Positions 8,101-35,100 are shown, counted from the stretch's first letter. The stretch is 64,000 bases of DNA from Bugula neritina (GCA_964035545.1 OZ037768.1:9270741-9334740); one strand, 5' to 3'. The notes: a model not told the origin generated them from the letters alone. Numbers and translations are program-made.

Positions 8101-11100
8101 TCTGGCATCACCGCTGGATGGTAAAACTGGTACTCTGAATGGAGAGTCAGGGATGTGCTCGTCATTAAACTTTATTGATATAACATATTCACCTAGAAAT
8201 GAAAACACTCCATATTCAGCTGTGCATCAGTGTATGGAGAACATATAGTTATATGAAACATAAGTAAACTCTCTGCTACACTGCAGTGCATTTCAGTTTG
8301 AATACGAAAAAAACTCTGTGAGCGAAATGTACAGCAGCACTGCTGTCGTACATAAAGCATATTACAACTTCTTGAAATGCTAAACGTTATCACTCAACGT
8401 TCTCAAGTTTGTAATAAGACATTATCACTCAACATTCTCGAGCTTCTGGCAATATAGCAGGTATGTATGCAAATATATCTTATAGAAACATTGATGTTAA
8501 CTTTAGCTTAATATATCATATATATAACCTGTAATTCAAGGTGAATGCAAGTATTTTATAATCATTTGAGCAAAGTAATTGTCTGACTCACGGCTAATTT
8601 CTACTTACCGTGTAGTCAAACTGTTACTTAATGATGTGTTACATTTCATGTAAATGTCAGCTAGCTTATAGCACTTCCAAATAGCATGAATGGCTTACCG
8701 GGATCTGTGCAACTATAAGAAACCACACTGGATCCATCATGCTTGTCTTCAAATTTAATATCAGCCTTGCTTGGCCCTTCAACACTAATGGCCAAACCGC
8801 CAGAGCCAGCCTCTCTGGTATATATGTTGAACTCATTAGGTACGTTAACTTCGCCTCTCTCTAAGCCTACATGTTACAAACATAACCTTGTGTTAGTCAT
8901 AGGTTAGGCATTATTGTAAGAAAAGTCTTTTAGAAATACTGCTGCGAGGTGCTAATACTGTTACAACTTACCATCACCACTAGCGTGTACTCTGTGGGCA
9001 CCTCCTTCTGTGATAGGTCCAACTGTAAACTGGAACGGAGAGCCGGGAATATTCAGCCCTTTATGTTTCACACTAACAATGTGTGGACCCATCTCTTTGG
9101 GTACAAATTTGATGGTATAATGATCTTCTGTGGAGTCCATGATGTCACACAGTTCAATCACACCTGATGGTGAGGTTACAGAGGCTACCATCTCCATAGG
9201 ATCTGAGCCTAAGATATATCACATGACACATCAGTGCTAGCAGGAGTTATTAAACAATGTCATGCAAAATTTTTATACATTCAGAAAAGATGGGGCAGGT
9301 GAAGAAGACCGACTTACCAGGAACTTTGAGGCTGAGCTCACAAACGCTGCCAACATGTGTGGTGTCGGCAGCTTTCTGTTGAGTTGTCAACATAGATTCT
9401 TCACTGACGCCAGTTGAACCACTTACTTTGCAGTTGAATGGACTGCCTAAACACCGCAACGGTAAATGTTGGAAGATGATAGAATATAGCTATATAGTAG
9501 AATATAGTTATAGTAACAAGTGTAAGTAGATTATTTCTATCCGATGGCGGAATTATTTAACTTAACAAAGCCACAGCATTGCAGCTATGAATTGAATTCA
9601 AGACAGTATATTGAAGTATAAATAATTGCTATAGTTATAATTTGATAAGTATTTTTATATACAATAAATGCTTCTAGAACTTTGTAGCTAGCCATAAAAT
9701 AACAGAATCTTTTATTCATATTACCAAGATAAAGTCACAATTTACAATTTACAATGGAAATACATTTTAAAAACAATTTTACATCATATACAAAAGCTAT
9801 TATATTTTCCAAATTGAATTTTTTTTAAGCCAACTTTCTTTATTAACCTTTACTACAGCTACAAAGTCTCCAAGTATATAAGAGTTACCTGGCACATGCT
9901 CATCGGCGAATTTAATGCTGATGACATAACTTCCAGGCTGAGTGGGTTTGTAGTTGACAGCAGTTGAGCCATCAGGTCTATCTTTACAATCAATATCAGC
10001 TTTGCTAGGTCCTTCAATAGACAGGCTCAGGCCACCATAACCTGTAAAGAGAACATATGAACATATAAGCACCTCAAACTACCCAACAGAGAAATAAGGA
10101 TGGTCAACAAGTAAGTCTTCAGTATAGTAATGCAAAAATTTTACAACAACTTTTACAATTTACAAAAAAATTACGTAAATCCCGAATAAATCTGTATTGT
10201 TTATATAATAAAAGTAGAATAAGCAGAACTACATGAGCAATTATCACATAGACATAACATTGCAACAAAAGAATTTTACTCAGTATTAGTGCATTGAGAG
10301 CTTTAGATAAAATAATGAAAAAGAACACCTAAATAATTTGGAACACCTATTTTAGTATAAATCTTTAAATACAGATTCATTTGCATCTTTTAAACTCCAA
10401 ACCTGCAAGCACCAGTTCACTTGTGTCTTAAAACTAGTCAAATGAAAGCCTTTTTAAACTTACAATAGAAGTCTGACATGCCGATACAGATTAATTATAG
10501 CAACGAAAACCTAAGGCACAATTTTGTACTCGCAAACCCTCAGCAACAAATGGTCTGGTTGCCAAATATACATCTTCATTCTATATAAAACTCAGTAAAG
10601 TAACCACAGAACAAATCTGTGTTTAGATATTTCAAGTGCAAAAAGCGAAATACAGGATTAATACTATGTGTGTACATAACGTTCCTGGCCATATCACAAG
10701 ATTATAATTATATAGACAACATGAAATAACATATACAGGTAGATTCCTGCTTTCAGGTATCTACAGCTCAATGATAAAATAAACCCCCACACAGCTTAGA
10801 CATAGTCGGCTAGCTATTAATTAGTGTTAATAATATTAAAGTTTTTCTAAAGGTCACAAGAATAGCTGCAGCATCTAACAGTATCAAAAATATAAATCGC
10901 CAATAAAATAATCAATGTGGTTAGACAGAAAATGATCCGTTGGCAAAAGAAATATTATTTGTAATACTCATTTTCATATGTAAATATAAGCAAAGATAAA
11001 AAAATCAAATACTTCTGAAAATATAAAAAATTACCCTTCCAATTACTATAATCCAGTGATGTGGGGCCTTGGGCAACACACACATGTTTATCCTTGTTAT

Positions 11101-14100
11101 GACGCCGTTCATAACCAGCCCGATTAGCCATGTTTGACAAAAATTAGCTCGTCAGATAAATAAAACTATGAGAGAACTATGATAAATCTATCTGGGCAGA
11201 CAATGCACTTGAGAACAGAGCAGCGTCTATTAAACAACTAACTGAAAACTGTAATAATGAATGTGTTTGAAAGACTTGCTAAGCACACTGCAGAGGCTAT
11301 TTGTTAACACATTGACATACATTACAACCCAAAAAGGAAATGCTGATATTTCACTAAGAGTAATATATATCAATAAAAATAATATAATTGCTAGTATCAG
11401 AGCCACAACCCTGTAACGCTAACGTTGCCTTATAATATAATGTATTACTCGGTTTAAAGGCAGGTTTACACTAATATGGCTTATATTTGTAACACGGAGA
11501 TAAAAATATCTTAAAAAACATGCTGTAAGTTATAAATATATACTTTGCGTGAGTGTTTGGAGAATTATAGTTCTTGAATCTGCTATAAGTATTTTCAATA
11601 TGAGATAAAACTTTCCTTAGAAGTAAAATAGCAAAGGCAACTGAATGATCAACTGACAACAGAAACAATCGCCTGGCAAGCTCAAAGCTTATATATCATA
11701 GTTTAACTATGCAACAGATTTTGACCCATGAAACCCACGAGATGCTATGCAACTGTAGCAAATCTCAAAATAACAAACATATAAATGTTTCTAGAAAAAG
11801 TAATTGGTTAATTTGTAATATATCTTAAAAATATTTTATAAGATTTCTTGTAACTATTACAATCCATTAAAAAAATCAAAAAGCCATAACCATGTATTAC
11901 TTATTTTATTGATCTAAACTCACATCACTAGTAAAAACATAAATTTAATATGATACAACCTTTAGACCACCCATTACCCAACCAAAAAGAAAGAATAAAT
12001 AACTATACCTGCATCTTTAGTGTCCACGTAAAATTCATTGACTTCATTTGCAGTGCCACTAGTGAGACCATCACCGTAGACCTTCACCTTGTCAGCATAG
12101 CCTACTTCATTTCGAGCAGCATTTATCTTGAATGGAGAATTGGGAATATGCTCCCCATCTTTGTAGACATTTACGAGGTGAGTACCAGTCTCATGTGGGG
12201 TGAACGAGATACCTAAAACATGCAGTAAACCTGCCTATGTAGAACTAGAGTATCTGCAAGTTATTATGTGAGCAAATTGTATATGAGAGGTTACTTACAT
12301 CAACAAAATATAAACCATATAATAAAATATAAATATATAGTATATATAATATTAACTACATGATATATACTACCTGATCAGAAAAATACAATTTGAAAAT
12401 ACTTTTACGGTCAGAATTGTAGCACTAACAACTCTACACATTATCCAAGTATTATTTAATTTTGTATTTCAGTAAACTTGAAGCAAATGAATAGAAAGGA
12501 AATATTAAAGTGCTACACTGAACCCTGCCGAAACTGTCTTACCTAGATGGCCATTAGGTAGCTTCTTGAGAATGCAAGGTTCTGATTTGCCAGATGGAGC
12601 TGTGATGTCAGCCTGAAGCTCATGGATGTTATACTGTTCTACAGAAAGCGAAAACTCACTGGCTTGTCCCATAGACAACTGAGCTTTTTCCTTGTTGGCC
12701 TCACCTAAACGAACATTGGATCTCATTAAATGAAGCAAACTTCCATGGCAAAGTGGTGGCTACTTCTTAGCTATGTTTCAGTTAATTAACACACTTTTTC
12801 AATTCTTGCAACAGCATAGCATGTGAATATGAAAAGGCAAATGCAGGCAATAAACAGCAATAGTTGGAATGAGAATAAAAATATAGACAGATTGAAAATT
12901 ATTGTCTAAATCCTTACACTAAGTTAACTTCCATTACAATAAAAAAAGATATAAATGGAGTAATACAACCTATAGTTGGCAATCACACAAATCAAAAAGA
13001 GCTAAGAACCACTCTATTATCACTACACTACAGCTGTAGTCCTGCAATCTACACTGCTCACTGTTTCTGCTGCTTTTTACAAGAAACCCGTTTACAAATA
13101 ATGTGACATGTATATTACTATCACAAAATTAACAAGCATTGAAGCAGAAAACATGTGAGCAATGCTTCAGAAAGCAGTTTATCTAACTGCTAACAAAACA
13201 TAATCACAACAGACAGAATAAAAGAAATAGGTCATTAAAGCCTGAATGTCATAGCAATAAATAGAGATATCAAGTTTATTAGGGTTATTGGGGAGTGTCT
13301 AGTGTCTCATGAATACAGCAACAATTAAATCAAATTTAGTAGGTGCCAGTTAACCAAGCATAGTGTATGACAACAATAACTAACTATTCAACTGAAACAC
13401 AGTAAAATATCTAATCAAAATATAAGTGAGAAAACAGAGAGTAACAGCATTGAAGGAAATGAATAGATATTTATAATGGTGAGTGGAACTTCAAAGCAGC
13501 ACTACTAATATGAGTTAATTGCAAGGAACTCTTGAGTGCTGATTGCACATCTCCTTCAACATTAATCAAGATGATAACTCCAATATAGAAATATTCATCA
13601 GTAAATGATAAAAAGCTTGTGAGAAGTGCAGGAGTGTAGAGAAAACAAAGTTTTCCAAAGATGCCTCGTAATTTTGTTTAACATTACAAGTATTGAAATA
13701 ATGCCTTTATTGGGTTATATGGACATTTTGGAAAACTTTATTCCGAGTTGGTGAAACATCAATGACAGTAATTGATCAAAGCACTCGAAAGAAACTTTTA
13801 CTAGAGAAGCTAACACAATAGAATGCCGCAGACATACCTGATAGGTTCTCTAGAAGAATCAGCACATCATACGTTAACATTTACAATGTAATTCAAATAG
13901 CAGTGCATATGTTATGCTATAATACAGGACAATTAACGGAGAATACAAATAGGAGTCGTCACAACAATGTAGGGCACGCGACATACATCTTGTACTAGGA
14001 GAAAACCTACGTCCTGTACTAGGAGTCATCTGCCGGGATATTGTGGAATTCATGCACCTACCTGCGATGTATGAGGTGAATGGACTGCCCAGTATATGTT

Positions 14101-17100
14101 CATCATCAAACTTGACGACAACATTATATAGACCGGGTTCAGTGGGCAGGTAGGTGACGGTGCATGTACCGTCATCATTGTCTTGGCAAACAATTTCAGC
14201 TTTACTTGGGCCTTCCACAGCAAGGGACAAACCACCTGCAAGCACACAGATATTACGTGCCACTGCCATGCCACAAATATGTCACACATTGCAGAAAATG
14301 GGACCATGGACAGGACTCATGCGAGACAGGATTCTGGGACATCCACACCGTCCTAACCTGAAAGTGACCTCAAGACTTTACATACGAAAGGAGATCCGGC
14401 AATGTCTTTACCGGCACTGATCACCTTGACCTTGTAATCTCCGGCAAGCTCAGGGGTAAAAGTTACAGTATAGGTATTGTTTTGGTTGTCTGTGACATTT
14501 ACAGGGGTTTGCTTAGGACCTTCTAACGTAATATTCAAACTGCCTACATTCACACCAAACATTCCATTAAATGCGGCCTGTAGAAGTATGAGCTCCACAT
14601 AAGATTGACACAGGTGAGATGCATTTCAGTGTCTCAACAAAAGTTTATCAACACACCCCCGTAATAAACTCCTCCATACGGTGTTGAGAGCTTCACATAG
14701 GCTATACATGTTGCTACAAATCATTTTCTAGCAATGCTTAAACGGAACAAAGTCTCTTTAAATAAGATCTATAAGCTAAGCGTATAATCGACAATCTTTC
14801 GACACTAGAGCTGCTCCATTTAAAATTCAAATTATCTACATGACAAACATAATACCAGTGAAAAACTTTGTAAATTAATTGAACCAAATAAACAAACATG
14901 TAAAGTGAAAACTTTGCAAGTCAACTAAATCAAAGTTCCTACCTGCTCCAGCCTTCTTTGTGTCAATAGTGAATGAGCAAGGCTCGCCAGCAACCCCATA
15001 GCTAAGTCCTGGGCCATAAGCAGATACAACACCGCTGTCGACAGCATCTACATAAAACTGGTAGGGGCTGCCTGAAAATACAAAGCAAATACTGAATATA
15101 CTACAGGTAATCTGATTGCACCAATAACAGGGCAAAGGTGTGAATAACATAATTAATATATGAAAATATAACATCATAATAAAAACATGATGACAATAAG
15201 ATTATTAGCTTGAAATTTGTCACATGTCTTATAAAGTGGACCACATAAATTAAGCATGTAATTTATATTACAGATGTCAGCAACTGCTAAAAAAGATATT
15301 AAATTTTAAAATCTGTTTTACCAAACATGACAAAATGAGTTTCAATATGAAATACTACACAATAGCAAATTTAAAATACCTTGCAAAGGCTCATCATTAT
15401 AGAAGACATGAAGGTTGTGCAGACCAACTTCACTCGGTTGATAGTTGATTGTGACAGTACCATCTCCATTATCCTTAATCTGCACAGGACTTCTTTGCCC
15501 AGATGGTGCCTCTACTTCAGCTATAAAAACAGGAGACAACTCTCAATAGTAAACATATTGAGCTGTGATGTTCCATTTGGCATACTTCAGTGCAAAGTCT
15601 GGCACGCACATATCCATTGTATTCTTAGCATTTGATGACTTTTTGAACTAGAGTTATGATACATCAAAAAGAATTTCAGTACAGTATGTAGAAACCCTTA
15701 ACTGCTTAATGATTGATAAAGCATGACAGCAGTTATTATGTGGGTGTTGATTAACTTGACCCATAAACATAATGGCAAAATATTCAATGAATCATGTGAT
15801 GAACACTTTTCACTGCCTGTTCAATGGGTTACAAGAAAGGCTGGTAACAAAATCCAGCATACGACAAACAACTTCTGTGGTAGCTCATTTGAAAATTGAC
15901 TGCAAATGTGAAAGCAACAAAATGCATATATTTATCAGTAGCCTATATTCCACATACCCAAAACATAGGCGAAGACGGGTCCCACAGGAATAACGAAGTC
16001 CACTGGGTGAAACATGTTGAGATTAGGATATCCCGGAGCTGCTGATTGCTGTTCACTCACCTTTTCCATAGGGATAATATCAGCCTGCAGAATGTAACAT
16101 AATTGGCTATTCAACTGATTGAATAGTGCAAATTAGTTTTATTCATAATATCATAATTCAACTGTTGCCACAATAAATCATTTCAAGTTTAAACAAGTAA
16201 AATCAAGTAGAAACTCGGAATCAATCAAAATTATAGATCTATAATTTGCAGAAAAAAGGTTTTGGTAAGCAGAAATAAAGCTGGATAGATTGAGAATTTT
16301 CATTACAACTAAGCAGTAATGTAGTATTTCACATCTGAGTGTAGTTTCTATGCTATAGGCACTATGAACAGCATTTATGTAATCACTAGTGAAAACAGTG
16401 AAATTATCTATTAGCATTAGTATTAGTGTGTGTGAGCATAACTCTAAATGTTGATGATTAAATTTCTACAACTACTATAATTTCCAAACTTCATCTTTCA
16501 CAATATTACTTCAAGTAAATTAAACAAACTATTAAAATCTAAATAAGTCTATACAAAGACAATTACATACACGGTATGAAACATTAGGAAACATTGAACA
16601 GAAAGGATAGATGAATGTGTGCAAGACCACATAACATTCAGATTTAAAGACTGAAGATGAGAAGACAACTACAACGTTACATGATTCAGCATTATATTAG
16701 TGATTAGAAACCATCACCATAGTCTACTTTTATATTGCAAACACATTTCAAGCATTACCTCTTGAATTGCCAGTTCTTCCTCAGGTACAGCCTAGAATAA
16801 TTTAGTATTCAACATGTGACATATCGCCATATTAAGCATTAAAGTTTAATGATTAAACTAATATCACATAACACAAGCTAAAATAAGATAACTCATAAAA
16901 GTGCAAAAGGGCATTGCAATATATTTTCAAACTATTTTAAACGTATTTTACCTCAACTTCATAGTCGCCTTCAGGTATAGGAACTCCACCAAATTTGATG
17001 CTAATTCCATAACTTCCTATTGACAGAAAATAACATTACTGAATAATTTATTGAGTTCAATCAGATGATGAAACAGATAGCATTCTGAAGAAAGTCATAT

Positions 17101-20100: not shown

Positions 20101-23100
20101 AGGATCATTGCCTGGTACAACATTCACTTCTAATGGAGAGCCTGGTATTGGTACGCCATCATATGTCACATCCATTTGATGTGGGCCTAAACAGAACACA
20201 ATTTTTTATGTACAAGAGTAATATTTACATGCTTGCATAATTAATAGATTAGGTATGTTATAAAATCTCAAGTTTTTAACTTTGTAAAATATAAATAAAT
20301 CTAGAGAAACTAGCCAAAAATTAGGGTTACCTTCTTCAAATGGAGAGAAAGCAACCTTGTAAGTGCCATCATCATTTTCCTTAACCAAAGATTCACTTTT
20401 AGTACCAGAAGGCCCAGTGATGATAGCCTTCACTTTACCGTCACCAGGAGGAGAGACTGAGCTGGCATCAACAGTGAAGTCAGTAGTCGAATCCATGAAC
20501 ACATCTGAAATAATCAACATTTCATATTAGATGAGATAAACTAAAAATAAAGACACAACGTAATGGTAAAATTAATATTACGATTCACGGCAAATGTAAT
20601 AGTACTAATCTTCAGCATATATAAATTAATGAAAACAACAAGATTAACAACAATCCATGCAATTTCAACAGCTTTAAAACATGCTAATACAAATAAAAGA
20701 CACGAAATAAATATTGTAGCAGCCATGTCATGACTAGTAAGGCTAGTCTGGTTCAAGTTGAAGATAAAACAGTGTTAATACAGAAATTGATGTTAAAAAA
20801 CATAAAGTCTGCAAACAGCCTCCTCGATAAAAAAACCATGCGTTTTAAGCACAAGACAACTTGCAAAGCAAGTGTCTTACCAGGCCTTCTCGGAATTTGA
20901 ACAGGTGCATCAGGTAGGTCTAAACTGTCATCTAGTGTCGCATATGTGTTGAATGGAGAGTCAAGTACGTGTTCACCATTATACATGACAGAAATTATGT
21001 ATGAACCAATTTCTTTTGGCATAAAGGTTACCAGACAAAGATTGTTCCCCAAATCCTCTGCTTTCAACTCAGGCTTGCTAGGACCAGTTACTGAAAACCT
21101 GAGTGTACCGGGTCCAGATTTATTCATATCAACAATAAAATCTTGATAGTGATTAACAATGGCGTTTTTTAAGCAGCTTCCAGAAACATTCACCAGCTTC
21201 GAAAGAGGGATTGCATGATCGTCTGTACTTAAAATTTGTGATTCAACGCTGCATTCATCTATTTGAGCGTGTGTTGGACTAATCAAAGTTTCTTGAGCAC
21301 CAAGACATGGGGTGACCTGAGAATCAAAACCATTTTTTGAAGTTTCAACTTGCACTTTTTCAACCTGAAGGTCTTCAAAGTCTTTTTGAGAGACGATTTT
21401 CAAAGAATTACTGTCATCTAATGTTTCCGTATGATCATTTTTGCTGAATATTGTTTTCTCAACTGGTTCTTGAACATCGACAATTGAATCCGAACTAAAT
21501 AAAGATGGGCGATCTACAAGACTCAATGATGCACAAGTATTCACGTTTTCTGTGACTGTATCAACTGGTCGAACAACTGGACTTTCATAAACATGTGCAT
21601 GTGATTTGTCAGCAGAAAATCCAGAAATGGGATTAGGCGATTCATTCTGAATAGCAACTGGTTCAGAAGTCACCGTGTCATCAATATTGACTTGTTGATT
21701 CATTTCTTCAGTCATATCAGAGTTGCACCAAGTGGCTGTATTAGGCACATCGTCTAAGGTGCCAAAGGGGTTACTTGCATTGGTAACTAGGTCGAACGAC
21801 TCCTCTATCGAGTAATCATGTTTTTCACCAGTATTTTGTGCATGCAAATCATCAGAAATGTCTTGTATATTTACGCAAGGCGCAGAGCAAACTTGGCTAT
21901 CGGGTATGCTTTCAGCAATCACAAAAATATCTCCAAATGATAAGAATAACTCATTGTATTTTATCTTGATGAAGTATTTGCCAGCCTTTGAGAGAATATA
22001 AAAGGCTTTGAATCTCTTATCACCAATCTTTTCAACAGATGCCGGTACTGTTGTCCCACCTAGACTGTGTACTACAAAATCTAGTTTTCCTGGACTTGCT
22101 TCAGAAGTATCAACATAAAATTCTGTCACTTTCCCACAGATGGCAGATTCTAATCCAGCACCAAATACGATTAGGCCTGTATTTGAACATTTAAAGACTG
22201 GATTATTCAAACATTCAGTGGGAGTTGTCGCAGAACTGCAAGCAATACTTGAAGGAGCTTCTGCATCATTTATTGATTCTTGTAAGGGTGCGTTTTCAGT
22301 CTTGAATATTGGGTCTTTTTTGCGCCCAAAATGGTTTTCATTGTTTTCCACTTTATCTGTGGCATGAGTAGTTTGTTTTGACGAAGGAGAATCACGAGCA
22401 GGTGCAATATGGGAAGAAAATGGTGATCCTGGAATCTGTTCATTGTTGAAGGTTACATTAATGGCATATACGCCCACTTCAAAAGGGATAAAAGTAACTT
22501 CTGATTTGCTCAAACTTAATTTTTTTAATGAAACATCGGGTTTACATGGGCCAATAATGTTGTAATCCAATTTTCCTAATCCTGACTTGGTGGTGTCAAC
22601 AACAAATGTGCTAGGTTTGCCAACTACTCCATGGGTTAAACCATCTCCATCTATCTTCACTCTAGAAACAAGGCTTGAGGTTTTTACCTCTGTTTTATAT
22701 GGGGACTGGGCCACAGGTTTACCATCATAAGCCACATCAATGCTATACATTCCAGAGATCAGTGGAGTGTATGTGACCTGACATTCACTAGAAGAAATTG
22801 TTCTGTAAGTAACAGTAGGTTTAGAAGGTCCATTAATATCGACTTGTAGCTTGTCAACTTCAAAATCAACTGCCCTTAAAGTGAATGAAACAGGTTTATC
22901 CACTTCTCCTGAAGTCAAACCTTCTCCGAACACTTCTATCTCTTTAGCTGCTACTGACGATGGTTTACTAATTGAGCAGAATGGAGATCCAGTGACATGT
23001 CTATCATTGTAAGTAACTTCAATACTGTAATTCCCTTCGTGTTTTGGAATATAAGTAACTTCTAGCTTTCCATAACCAATATTCTTAGACGACATTGTAG

Positions 23101-26100
23101 GAATCTCAGGACCATGAATTTTGTAGGAGATATTTTCCAAAGACAAACTTCCAGCTTCAATAATAAAAGCAGCAGCTTGGCCTACATTCGCACAACTTAA
23201 ACCGCGTCCATAAACTTTCACTTTAGGTTCATGTTTTGGTTGGTGACCTTTGCTGATCTTGGGCTTGAAAGGAGAGCCAGGCACATTATTCCCATCGTAA
23301 GTAACAGCAATAGTGTAAACCCCAGTAAGGCGAGGCACATAAGTAACTTCAACTTTCCCAGGAGCAATTTCTTTAGAAGTAATTTGTGGTTTGATGGGGC
23401 CACTAATATCAAACGCAAGTTTACCTTTGCTAGCTTTTGACGTGTCAATTACAAATGAAGCAGGCTTGCCATTCTCACCTTGAATGGCACCCTCACCACA
23501 CACTTCAACTGCAGCTGCAGGATTAATTGCTTTTTCTATTTTGGGCTTAAACGGTGATCCAGGTATAGGATTTCCATCAAAATAAACTTCGACATTACAC
23601 TGGCCTAAATTTGTTGGAACAAATGATACTTCTAGCTGGTTAGTGTTCAGAGACCTTGTTGTAGATGCAAGTTTTTTGCCTGAATCTATTATGCTGAAAT
23701 CAAGTTTGCCCAAACCAGACTCAGAAGTGTCAACAACAAACTTAGATGTCTTCCCACATTCCCCAGATACCAATCCAGAGCCAAACGCCTTTACTTTGTC
23801 TTTTTTGCTTTGAGAGCTAGGTTTGCGTGATTCTAATATTTTTGGCTTAAAGGGGGCTCCTGGGACTGCCTGGCCACCCAACTTGATGCTGATTGTATAG
23901 ATTCCTGATGCAGTAGGTGTGTAAGATACCTCATATTTTCCTTTACCAAGGTCTTTAGACGCAAGTTGAACTGAAACAGGGCCATCAATAGAAAAGTCCA
24001 GCATGTTTGCATTTGCTGTTGGGCAATCAACAGTGAAAACACATCGTTGATTGCAGTATCCAGTAACAATGCCATCACCATATACTTTCACTTTAGACGC
24101 TTGGTCAAAGCTGTCTTTCTTTTGAGAGCTAGGTTTGCGTGATTCTAATATTTTTGGCTTAAAGGGGGCTCCTGGGACTGCCTGGCCACCCAACTTGATG
24201 CTGATTGTATAGATTCCTGATGCAGTAGGTGTGTAAGATACCTCATATTTTCCTTTACCAAGGTCTTTAGACGCAAGTTGAACTGAAACAGGGCCATCAA
24301 TAGAAAAGTCCAGCATGTTTGCATTTGCTGTTGGGCAATCAACAGTGAAAACACATCGTTGATTGCAGTATCCAGTAACAATGCCATCACCATATACTTT
24401 CACTTTAGACGCTTGGTCACAGCTGTCTTTCATTTGAGAGCTAGGTTTGAGTGATTCTAATATTTTTGGCTTAAAGGGGGCTCCCGGGACTGCCTGGCCA
24501 CCTAACTTGATGCTGATTGTATAAATTCCTGATGCAGTAGGTGTGTAAGATACCTCATATTTTCCTTTACCAAGGTCTTTAGACGCAAGTTGAACTGAAA
24601 CAGGGCCATCAATAGAAAAGTCCAGCATGTTTGCATTTGCTGTTGGGCAATCAACAGTGAAAATGCATCGTTGATTGCAGTATCCAGTAACAATGCCATC
24701 ACCATATACTTTCACTTTGGATGCTTGGTCACAGCTGTCTTTCTTTTGGGGGGCAAATTTTTTACTATCAACTTTGCTGTTTCCTTGGTTTTTATCGCTA
24801 CTGGTTTCTGGTAACTTCTTATCAGATTCAGGTTGTGACACACCTTTTTTCTTGAAATGTTTGAGTTGTGCATTCACCCATTCTGGCACATTATCAGCTT
24901 CCTTTGCCGCTCCAGTTTTTTTATTTTTACTAAATGGCTCCTTAGGGGAAATAGCTTTGGGATCTCTTGTAGATGGTTTTTTCAACCATGGTTTACTCGG
25001 TTCAGCATCAGCTTGCTTGACATGGGCAGGATTGGCAAATTTAATTTTGGTTCCTTTGCTTTTGGTAGGGTTGGGTATTTGCTTTTGTCCATCAGATATT
25101 ACAGCAACTTTAAATGGACTATTATTGACTAGCATGCCATTAGTGTAAACCTCAATGGTATATTCTCCAACTTCATTCGGTGTAAATGAGACGTTATATA
25201 GACTATGTCCCTTTTGAATTAATGGGCAAAGAACTTTACCACTAGGCGACCGTATAATCACACTAACAAACAGCTTTCTCACCTTTGAACTATCTTTGAT
25301 TTGAAATCTGGCCATTTTTCGGACAGTAAAGCCTATGTATAAAGCAAGAGGAATCAAAATAGCACCACTAGATTGTAAATATAAATAAAAACTATGAATT
25401 ATACCCTGCTAAAATTACACTATAGATTTACCTTTATCTAAGCCGACCACCTTGACACCACTAACATCAATTTTAGGTTCAATGTGTACTTTATAAGGAC
25501 TTGTTGGAATTTCCTGGTCAGCAAATATCACGCTAACAGTATAGGTGCCATATTCTTTGGGCTCATATTCAATTCTGCAATAACCCAATTTAACATAGAT
25601 TGATGATCCACCAATTGTACAAAACCGTAGTTCCGGCAACATTTGATATACGAAAACGCTCGAAATGAAACAAAATACTGAGTTTACAAATTGTACCTGA
25701 ATAAGCCTTCACCATTATCTTCTGCGTCTACTGGGACATCCACTCCTTTGTCATTAGTTAGAGAGATTGCAACATCACCAGGACCTGCTTCTGTGCAGTC
25801 AACAAAGAAGTGTGTTTGCTCACAGCATGCAACACCTTCCTCAATTCCTGGACCAAACACCTTGACTTTTTCAGGCATTGATGGTTCCTCCACGTACACC
25901 TATGAAATTTTGAATGTGGATATCATAAGAATTCAATTCAACACTAAATATTTTGTATATTTTTACTAAAGATTTGGCTACTCACTCTAAAAGGGCTCTT
26001 GGGAACATTCACGCCTCCGTAAGTAACAATGACAGTGTGCTTTATAGGTTCTTTGGGTTTAAACTGGCAGGTATAGGTACCATCACCATTGTCCTTGACT

Positions 26101-32100: not shown

Positions 32101-35100
32101 GGCTGACTAATCCACCCACTTGGGTATCTCAGGAATGCTGATTATAATGATAGAGTGGAAAACAATTACCTTCTGTAAACACTTCGAAATAAGTTTTCTT
32201 GCCGCACTGCACACCAGTAGCTTCCAAGCCAGGCCCTACAGCAGTCACTTTCTCTGCATCTCCAGCCGCACCTTCAACCTTCACCTTGTACGGGCTCTTT
32301 GGGATTTCTTTTCCAGCAAATTTGATGATGACCTAATAGCAGCAACATTAGATATCTCAACCAACACTGCAATTTATACCTACAGCTGTTATGTAGGAAA
32401 CATGAGAATATCAGAGACGTAGAACGGCTGCCATGACAAAATAGTACAATCATACCTCCAATAAAATTGAAATATTATACAAAAAAGTCATCTTAGTTTA
32501 CACAACATCATTTGTTAACTAGTCTAAGTACAACTTGATTCACCTGGTGATTAAGTATGCTGTGACACCTTGCATATGCAGATAGTAGTAACTCAGACGA
32601 AATAATTACACCATGCTCCATCTACCATAGCACATGTACTAGTCAACTGAAACTAATGGACACACTAATAACACTGAAGTTACTCACTGTGTACTCTCCT
32701 TCCATCGAGGGGGTGTATGAGCAGGAATAAGTAAGGTTTCTGTCGTTGTTGAACACAACTTCACACTAAAATCAATGAAATGCAGAACTCCTTCAGCTTT
32801 TCATAAAAATGACAAAATTTGACACGAGGTTTTAATATGGCTGTGCTTTAATAATTCTTTATTGATAAAAAATGGAAATCAGCAATTTGGGCACTTCAAC
32901 TGCATGACAGAGGATGCATTACGGACTAAGACTAGGTGAGCAGGCGGCTCTTTCATTTTTCAAACATAATAAGGTCAAAGCTCACTCAACAGTTCAACAT
33001 ATTGCATTTTATGCCAACAGTGACTTTCATGGACTGTAAGAAACTCTAGTTTGAGAGAAGTCAAATTTTATAAACCTCCATAATTTTAATAATGTGCAGT
33101 TCGAGGCTTTATACCAAGATGTAAGTTTACATGCTGCATTTAACTACCAGATTTGTTTTGTGGAAGCCTCAGAGACAACCATTGGCTAATACTGACTGAA
33201 ACTCCAGTTCCACGATGTTGGGTTTAGTTTGCACTCGGCAGTCATCTTTGTGAAGTCAGTGAAGTATTGAAGAGAGTAGTGAACTGTAGCTTATCTTTAT
33301 GAATGCCATGAATATCATTAAATGGCAGGAGAAGGGCATTAAACTGTCAGTAAACTATATACACCTAATTGACTTTTAAAATTATCTGTCAACTGCATTA
33401 CCTCTTCAGCTTGTTCATCAGCATTGACCACTTGGACAGTGATTTCTCCACGGCCTGCACTAAATGTCTCAACAGTAAAGTAAGCCGGGGCGAGCGAACA
33501 CACACCTTCAGGCTCAAGTCCTACGTACAGCATAAAGACATCATGCACCATGCATTAACTACATGTATAACTCAGAAAACATCGCATCACTTCCAACTTA
33601 GATGGAGCACAGGCTGCTATAGTGTATGCATTTCCCACACGTGACATACATAGCAAGTAAAAGGGCCTAAGGCTACTCCATTAGAAAAACAGAAGAGTTT
33701 TCACATCACTGCATGTCACAGCAAGGATACTCTGTTTAACCACTGGCAGCATAATATACCAGTACAATAGCAGTACAAACTTGTGCATCAAACTTCAAGT
33801 ATGCATGATGAATCTTGCACTTACTAACTGAAACTGGACCAGTATTTCAAAAAAAAGTGAAAGCTTAGTCAATCTCAGTAGGCCTTTAGCTCTAGCATTT
33901 CAGTGTGAATAAAGAAAGCCCACCTCCCTTTCCCTAACACTAGTATGAGCACAACTAACTATACCCAACCCTCTTAGGTGGTGCTTATCGTAATTCCTTT
34001 GGCTGTGATAAAATCAGCATCAGTCAGTTGATATGAATGGACTATAATGGAAAGCTAATACATTGTTATTGTGATGTTTAACATGAGGTCTAGAATTTTC
34101 TCACCATTTCTGAACGTTTCGGTATGTTTCATAGAACAGTCTATTACTATATATCGCTTTCCATCAACAATTTTCAAATTTGTTACAACATGGAGCTTAG
34201 CAATGTTAACTGAACTGTAATCATGCTTGAAGATATTGCACAAGACAGGTAACACGGGACATAACTTAGTCAGGCAGTTTTCCCACTTACGTTTTCTGAT
34301 TTACCACCAGGGTTTGTAACAACTACGCTGGGCTGGCCTTTGCCGGCAGCAAATGTATCTATTTTGAAATTGCAAGGCCGCCCCTTGCAATTGCCTTTCT
34401 TTTCAAGACCTGAACAGTAACAAAGGTGATAGCTTTCTAGGAATTCATTGAAAAGTTGGATATCCAACACCAGTCAGCCTGATCAAATCTTCACATATTC
34501 TTTAGTTTTGTGAATGCGAGGTTGGCTTGAAGATTAAATTGGCTATTCAGTGAATAATGTCAAACTCAAATTACAGGTCAGCTCTATCTATCTACTCCTA
34601 TCACTCATTTCATAAATACCAGTCAAAACAAAATGCATTTAAAACTTGATTTTCCAAAACATTTAAAGTTATTGGAGTGTGAGCAGATCAAACAAAAGCT
34701 GTTGAAAGACTCATGAATAATGGTGGAGCAACATGAGCATTTATTACCTATGTTTATATGATTTCAAATCTGACCTACAATAACACAATGCATCAGATTC
34801 GAATGTGGTAGGGTTTATACCTGGACCATAAGCCCGAACTCTGGCAGGGTTGGTTCTCGGTCTAAGTGGAGCACCAGGTTTCAGCTTAGCATTGGGAAAC
34901 TGGGACAAGTAGGTCATCATACTCAACTCATCAATTTTAGGATTAACCATCTCCTCTGGTTTTATAAGCTGCAAGTACAAGTGAGATATGGTTTACTGAT
35001 CAGCCACTCTACCACAAGGGATTAGGATCCACCCACAAGCCAAGTCTGGCTACTGTCAATCAGCAGAAATATGTTTAGTTTCATCATTTACACTGCTTTA

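Follow-up and report, generated by a model that had tools for sequence, protein, structure and literature searches.

The filamin gene of the bryozoan Bugula neritina contains an internal exon of 4452 nt, which we have examined in a 64,000-nt window of the genome assembly (GCA_964035545.1, OZ037768.1:9270741-9334740; positions below are counted from the first nucleotide of the window). Judged by comparison of sequences, this giant exon is real, conserved and lineage-specific, and it encodes 11 filamin-type immunoglobulin (Ig) repeats and three linkers within rod 1 of the protein. The explanation that we consider probable is that it is a genuine coding internal exon of a single canonical filamin gene, that forms with and without it are both made and that its inclusion is regulated. 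No description of this exon was found in the literature on filamin in Bryozoa, on giant exons or on the evolution of invertebrate filamin isoforms.

The window gene extends on the minus strand from about 39645 to 5186 and consists of exons for the CH domains, colinear Ig-repeat exons and a C-terminal repeat, aligned with the filamin of the nemertean Lineus. The CH actin-binding exons (39645-39319 and 36824-36558, minus strand) are 70-71% identical to residues 3-198 of the Lineus protein, and their translation also matches the CH regions of amphioxus filamins. The core exons follow colinearly at 40-87% identity, and the segment at 5377-5186 (minus strand) shows 52% identity to the last Lineus repeat (residues 2396-2457), the dimerisation repeat being assigned by similarity only. 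By these alignments the gene is a filamin, with two CH domains, repeats of the PF00630 family and a C-terminal dimerisation repeat. Canonical metazoan filamins (FLNA, FLNB and FLNC, Drosophila cheerio, and the filamin-A-like proteins of nemerteans and molluscs) have the same tandem CH domains, PF00630 chain and C-terminal dimerisation repeat.

Inside this gene, an open frame of 1534 codons runs from 25357 to 20753 on the minus strand. An acceptor AG at 25334-25333 and a donor, G/GTAAGA, directly after 20881 delimit the giant exon within it (Table 1). Both junctions are in phase 1 and the length is divisible by three, so that the reading frame is kept on inclusion and on skipping, and the A strand encoded by the upstream exon continues in frame into either B strand, that of the giant exon or that of the downstream exon. 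The initial annotation of this stretch, made from its sequence, had described an intron-free exon of phase 1-1 that is dispensable for the frame, and the AG and GT sites, the stop-free run of 1484 codons and the phase on both sides bear this description out. Its further claim that all other exons of the gene are short is consistent with the remaining minus-strand open frames within the gene, none of which exceeds 136 aa. The core had also been said to jump from an R6-like to an R11-like repeat at this point; the upstream side is indeed R6-like, but the downstream exon matches repeats 9-10 of the 22-repeat nemertean filamin, and the jump holds only approximately. Two more loci rich in filamin repeats are present in the genome (C5:14818094-14854377 and C7:3122367-3141335); since their longest open frame does not exceed 279 aa, the giant exon appears to be specific to the window gene. 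A repeat or transposon origin of the exon was considered and rejected, as its C-terminal third, the part searched, is single-copy genome-wide.

Pfam recognised 11 Filamin/ABP280 repeats (PF00630) in the giant exon (E = 4.7e-173). Boundaries were taken from a purpose-built repeat hidden Markov model made from the giant exon (profile length 99), which placed the repeats at residues 2-78, 193-291, 297-395, 401-499, 500-599, 597-693, 694-789, 785-883, 881-976, 1045-1132 and 1367-1465, and the linkers at residues 79-192 (net charge +13), 977-1044 (-3) and 1133-1366 (-33). Both methods agree with the proposal of about 11 Ig domains, and the model leaves a basic, a short and an acidic linker, as had also been proposed. 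The first repeat starts at position 28 of the 99 positions of the profile and therefore lacks an A strand of its own, as anticipated by the suggestion that the upstream A strand is donated to a new first repeat. AlphaFold2 predictions, which rest on shallow alignments, gave predicted local distance difference test (pLDDT) scores of 82-91 for repeat 1, with six strands, and of 72-87 for repeats 10 and 11, against 23-61 for the linkers; the terminal tail alone scored below 50. In these models the Ig domains (72-91) are confidently predicted and the linkers are predicted to be disordered, and the alternation of Ig blocks with disordered spacers that had been put forward holds at the level of prediction.

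The linkers had been called PEVK-like as well, and here the composition disagrees. Linker 1 is rich in K, R, P and S (K+R 23%, P 10.5%) and carries motif islands, and linker 3 is rich in D, E, S and T (D+E 18%, S+T 20%, P 5.6%). The islands of linker 1, KIKFANP.QVKQ, GKPW.RKP and PEW(M/V)N.HLK, are common to most or all of five bryozoan sequences, only the KPW core being invariant in all five. Their conservation hints at binding motifs, possibly specific to the long isoform, rather than at a featureless spring.

Protein searches with the giant exon returned only genomic open reading frames (ORFs) or annotation models. The closest matches, far better than generic filamins, were ORFs of 2513 aa and 2528 aa on two bryozoan-associated metagenome contigs (BRYA16, here L001, and k141, L002) and a 2624-aa RefSeq protein of Watersipora subatra (GCA_963576615.1, L003); a scan of metagenomes added one further taxon (L005-7, ERZ17400xx, conspecific with P0273) and a sequence that duplicates L001. 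Together with the older B. neritina draft (GCA_010799875.2, L004), the search of related genomes that the initial annotation had proposed found a giant open frame between the same two flanking exons in all five of these other bryozoan sequences (L001, L002, L003, L004 and L005-7). At the protein level, orthologues of the upstream exon in Watersipora and the metagenomic bryozoan contigs share 75-82% of its residues, those of the downstream exon in L003 and L001 share 59-60%, and the first and last repeats of the giant frame are 45-57% identical to their bryozoan orthologues (55-56% for Watersipora). At least five lineages keep such a frame open over 4.5-7.9 kb, with protein identities of 36-56%; in the other bryozoans the frame measures 7.5-7.9 kb, and the number of lineage-specific repeats ranges overall from 11 to 21. 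In four species the segments follow one another in the same order: a partial repeat 1, a basic linker of 94-162 aa, an uninterrupted block of repeats, a small number of repeats set apart by short spacers, an acidic S/T-rich linker, the last repeat and a tail, the acidic linker being 234 aa long here and 308-474 aa in the three other species.

The splice sites are conserved as well. The equivalent upstream intron has a phase-1 acceptor, AG/GC, in L001, L002, L003 and L005, a phase-1 donor, G/GTA, is present in the window, L001, L002 and L003, and acceptor, donor and phase are kept wherever a contig reaches them. These sites bear on a different reading, that of an independent gene without introns, lying within an intron of filamin and having its own promoter and a free Ig-repeat protein as its product. 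NCBI has annotated the Watersipora orthologue in this way: RefSeq XP_067934891.1, 'filamin-B-like' (2624 aa, L003:10001-17875), is an independent single-exon gene inside a 2296-aa filamin gene, and the window frame likewise offers an ATG at codon 15 and a stop at 20753. We regard a nested gene as very unlikely. The start ATG of XP_067934891.1 falls within the upstream intron, in its pyrimidine tract, and the first 25 residues of this protein come from the intron; the window ATG, which is Met at residue 6 of the giant exon, corresponds to Leu or Val in the other species, with no conserved start codon; the phase-1 acceptor and donor are conserved in all lineages; and the A strand that repeat 1 lacks is supplied only by the upstream exon. 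At the other end, the 14-43 codons of read-through after the donor are unrelated between species, the frame of this read-through is disrupted in L004 by an indel of 4 nt (20806-20803), and the 376-nt downstream intron contains neither AATAAA nor ATTAAA.

The same observations at the 3' end speak to the possibility of an alternative terminal exon, where read-through past 20881 to the stop at 20753 would produce a truncated filamin without rod 2 or the dimerisation domain. Such an end would draw on 42 open codons beyond the donor, and in every species a stop follows soon after the donor; yet the unrelated and, in L004, disrupted read-through peptide, the lack of a canonical polyadenylation signal in the 376-nt intron and a donor conserved in phase make it highly improbable. 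Taken together, these comparative points argue strongly against both a nested gene and a terminal exon. The 'nested gene' of Watersipora looks like a mis-annotated filamin exon. In L004 the annotation splits the region into three models, of 917 aa, FLNA (396 aa) and FLNB (1145 aa), and on the reading of an internal filamin exon the RefSeq 'nested gene' and the fragmented FLNA and FLNB models would be pieces of one filamin gene.

The draft L004 also allowed coding constraint to be estimated. Across the gene, introns included, L004 and the window are ~92-94% identical (roughly 6-8% diverged), a level that fits the known B. neritina cryptic-species complex (PMC11480708). Maximum likelihood estimates of the ratio of nonsynonymous to synonymous substitution rates (dN/dS) between the two were 0.08 for the core exons (966 pooled codons), 0.27 for all giant-exon Ig repeats and 0.48 for all linkers (values for individual segments in Table 1), constraint being 3- to 9-fold more relaxed on the giant exon than on the core exons. 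Divergence at the first, second and third codon positions was 4.4%, 4.8% and 9.8% in repeats 5-9, and flat in the acidic linker (9.0%, 8.1% and 9.4%). Indels relative to L004 in the unique parts of the giant exon measure 6, 12, 12 and 3 nt, all multiples of three, with +12 and +3 nt in linker 3, and nearby introns include indels of 4, 1 and 2 nt. Because of the dN/dS values, the in-frame indels and the codon-position divergences, we conclude that the giant exon is in all likelihood translated and selected, far less tightly than the core. By the same measures, the acidic linker is nearly neutral and appears to keep only its frame, length class and composition. As a separate observation, synonymous and fourfold divergence from L004 in exons (~0.09-0.15; fourfold up to 0.19) was higher than intron divergence (~0.06), and the transition:transversion ratio was higher in the exon as well (2.9 against 1.9), which may reflect CpG decay in a methylated gene body.

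The history of the exon was approached with a tree of 90 repeats in all, taken from four bryozoan species and from the 22-repeat nemertean filamin, built by quick maximum likelihood; the careful tree search being unfinished, only well-supported branches are used here. All 66 repeats of the four species other than repeat 1 form one clade (Shimodaira-Hasegawa-like approximate likelihood ratio test, SH-aLRT, 95) with no nemertean repeat inside it, and the last repeats of the four species form an orthologous clade (SH-aLRT 99). Repeat 1 and its Watersipora and BRYA16 orthologues make up a separate clade (SH-aLRT 97) that groups with the canonical repeats, without a resolved position among them. 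Species-specific expansions are visible within the large clade, namely repeats 2-4 in the window and two alternating sets in Watersipora. The 312-nt Ig unit is present in 3.0 copies in the window (23809-24748) and in 6.0 copies in L004 (8646-10517), owing either to copy-number change between sibling lineages or to a difference between assemblies. Since repeats 2 onward form a single bryozoan-specific clade, the exon grew by duplication within itself, and intra-exonic duplication, one of two origins offered by the initial annotation, is supported by both the repeat tree and the difference of three versus six copies. For the other, a retro-derived origin, no supporting feature was noticed, no search having been aimed at one; the exon lies in phase inside its host repeat, and repeat 1 is of the older canonical type. 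The inserted repeats were also considered as one-to-one orthologues of canonical repeats 7-10, a candidate that was rejected on BLASTP, where they match best to repeats of a generic rod-2 type (R17/R19/R21) from Lineus, Danio, Branchiostoma and Pomacea. Within Watersipora, giant-exon repeats 7, 9, 11 and 13 and repeats 8, 10 and 12 fall into two separate well-supported clades, so that two Ig domains may have been duplicated together each time in this exon, where Bugula has a unit of one domain.

We then considered how the exon is used. On the evidence of its conservation and of existing gene models, it is very probably included in mRNA, and it is probably skipped in part of the transcripts as well. 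Inclusion is indicated by the FLNB model of the B. neritina draft, predicted by AUGUSTUS with transcriptome hints, in which the end of the exon is joined to the downstream exon. Skipping is indicated by the NCBI filamin model of Watersipora, which has 2296 aa and spans the locus, and so must omit the 7.9-kb frame. Since the exon is modular and phase-symmetric, its omission would give a normal 20-repeat filamin. The 376-nt downstream intron holds three copies of GCATG, the core of the Rbfox site, where 0.15 would be expected (P ~5e-4). In each of the four lineages checked, a (U)GCAUG follows the donor at a distance of 18-53 nt (P ~0.04-0.07 per lineage). These observations lead us to favour, on balance, the production of both isoforms with regulated inclusion. 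Elsewhere in the gene, GCATG has a density of 1.13 per kb gene-wide, and clusters of it lie near two pairs of duplicated or mutually exclusive exons, at 33134-34226 (four matches) and 14055-14322 (three matches) on the minus strand, where some of the matches may be coding.

Several observations weigh against regulated inclusion, or against the coding nature of the exon itself. Introns as short as those on its two sides (99 and 376 nt) speak for inclusion by default, and the exon could then be constitutive, the bryozoan filamin being always ~3700 aa long, or longer in other species, and the 20-repeat form never made. These introns are well formed, with a good pyrimidine tract, as expected under intron definition; the exon is shared by six bryozoan sequences and shows purifying selection; the hint-based AUGUSTUS model includes it; and the skipped form would be unusually short, with 2-4 fewer repeats than other metazoan filamins have about this point. 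The Watersipora model that skips the exon may have been built on protein homology rather than on reads. No transcript-derived protein fragment across either junction was found in searches with the whole exon, its N-terminal 216 aa or residues 1000-1483. A genome search for an Rbfox gene with PF12414 (Fox-1_C) had no match, its controls also remaining unmatched. The tail after repeat 11, which is supposed to stand in as an A strand, is poorly conserved and proline-rich. Divergence of the adjacent introns (5-9%) gave no sign of regulation when compared with that of other introns (4.5-10%). Constitutive use nevertheless seems to us rather unlikely, given that the 2296-aa Watersipora model omits the exon, that its constraint is 3- to 9-fold looser than that of the core exons, that the conserved downstream (U)GCAUG motifs are typical of regulated exons and that its repeats are not orthologues of canonical repeats 7-10.

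The remaining points of this kind come from L004, in which an in-frame TGA (L004:11189-11191) stands in place of the TCC of the window (~23128-23126) and the tandem array carries two frameshifts that compensate each other (L004:~9245-10000), in keeping with the split of its annotation into three models. If real, these lesions mean that the giant exon is broken in that lineage; they are possibly errors, because the L004 assembly was made from raw PacBio reads with a single round of Pilon polishing. Together with the near neutrality of the acidic linker (dN/dS 0.73), the TGA and the two frameshifts would suit a decaying or non-functional pseudo-exon that is never translated. Set against frames of 4.5-7.9 kb that five or more lineages have kept open at protein identities of 36-56%, dN/dS values of 0.13-0.28 in the Ig domains, indels that are all in frame, and the conservation of both the architecture and the linker motifs, we find a pseudo-exon scarcely credible.

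Our preferred interpretation, an internal exon whose inclusion is regulated, can be followed through to the protein. Splicing of the 99-nt and 376-nt introns would insert the exon into rod 1 behind the sixth repeat, the A strand of the upstream exon would complete its first Ig domain, and its own degenerate, A-strand-like tail would lead into the next core repeat. The product would be a filamin of ~3700 aa, reckoned on the 2229-aa core given by the initial annotation, and both arms of its dimer would gain 11 Ig domains together with ~416 residues of disordered linker. Such a longer arm should widen and soften the actin cross-link, and the choice between the two forms may be made through the conserved (U)GCAUG sites just downstream of the exon. 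As to its origin, the exon arose among bryozoans as a single Ig unit inside it was duplicated in tandem again and again, with a copy number that may still be changing. More tentatively, and in a version that we hold to be doubtful, this would be a cheilostome-specific isoform with a rapidly expanding giant exon, which (U)GCAUG enhancers of the Rbfox type would bring into the transcript in certain cells, such as those of the very fast retractor muscles, to give a compliant titin-like strut of ~400-550 kDa; elasticity, action as a titin-like spring and muscle specificity are all conjectural here.

Among known filamins, the bryozoan gene departs from the canonical ones in carrying a rod-1 segment in one 4.45-kb exon (7.5-7.9 kb in other bryozoans), with 11-21 lineage-specific repeats and long disordered linkers. 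Vertebrate FLNA, FLNB and FLNC have 24 repeats, and known filamin splice variants such as skipping of hinge 1, a 41-aa deletion in repeats 19/20 and the insert in repeat 20 of FLNC change the protein by tens of residues, not by ~1500. Great length as such is not confined to bryozoans: predicted proteins with CH domains and more than 24 repeats or long inserts include Branchiostoma filamin-A-like isoform X4 (3759 aa), B. lanceolatum FLNC (3051 aa) and Amphimedon filamin-A-like (3610 aa). One of the amphioxus proteins reaches 35 repeats, another contains a linker of 630 aa, and the sponge protein has 29 repeats. What may be distinctive is the single giant exon; the additional material of the amphioxus and sponge proteins lies elsewhere and shows no orthology to the bryozoan insert, the repeats of which fall in a clade of their own.

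The comparison with titin (connectin) made in the initial annotation applies to the predicted layout, since both proteins would alternate Ig-fold blocks with charge-biased, predicted-disordered spacers whose length varies between species, and both have a large exon and fast-evolving linkers. It fails for the PEVK composition: titin, which is differentially spliced, combines I-set domains with PEVK or other disordered springs, whereas the bryozoan filamin combines PF00630 domains with linkers of another kind. How long and how flexible the arms of filamin are determines the geometry and mechanics of actin networks, and likewise those of Z-disc-like anchors. A module of 1500-2600 residues of Ig domains and disordered linkers, placed at one phase-symmetric point, would be an experiment of nature on the tuning of filamin function by the length of its rod, and it is also informative on how giant exons grow by internal duplication.

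Table 1. Giant exon of the B. neritina filamin gene, its flanking exons and introns, and its encoded segments (window positions; dN/dS between the window and L004).
Feature	Position	Strand	Description	dN/dS
Upstream filamin exon, called constitutive	25432..25574	-	143 nt; ends with A strand and one base, ...GAT AAA G/gt, phase 1	
Upstream intron	25333..25431	-	99 nt; GTAAAT...pyrimidine tract...ATAG	
Giant exon	20881..25332	-	4452 nt, 1484 codons, phase 1-1, stop-free; 11 filamin repeats and 3 linkers	
Repeat 1, B-G strands only	25097..25330	-	profile positions 28-97; older canonical type; A strand from upstream exon	0.13
Linker 1	24755..25096	-	114 aa, basic, net +13, predicted disordered	0.26
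Repeats 2-4, tandem copies	23809..24748	-	three 312-nt units, 98% identity	
Repeats 5-9	22403..23833	-	five contiguous Ig domains	0.28
Linker 2	22199..22402	-	68 aa, predicted disordered, pLDDT ~31	0.55
Repeat 10	21935..22198	-	divergent Ig domain, pLDDT 72-87	
Linker 3	21233..21934	-	234 aa, acidic and S/T-rich, net -33, predicted disordered, pLDDT 23-37	0.73
Repeat 11 and 18-aa tail	20881..21232	-	tail stands where the A strand of the downstream repeat would be	0.22
Downstream intron	20505..20880	-	376 nt; three GCATG (20841, 20684, 20660)	
Downstream filamin exon, called constitutive	20331..20504	-	174 nt; starts ag/AT GTG TTC; B strand onward of next repeat	

Opposite the tandem Ig copies, an antisense open frame of 157 aa is present on the plus strand (window 24675-25148), most likely as a by-product of the repeated coding sequence.

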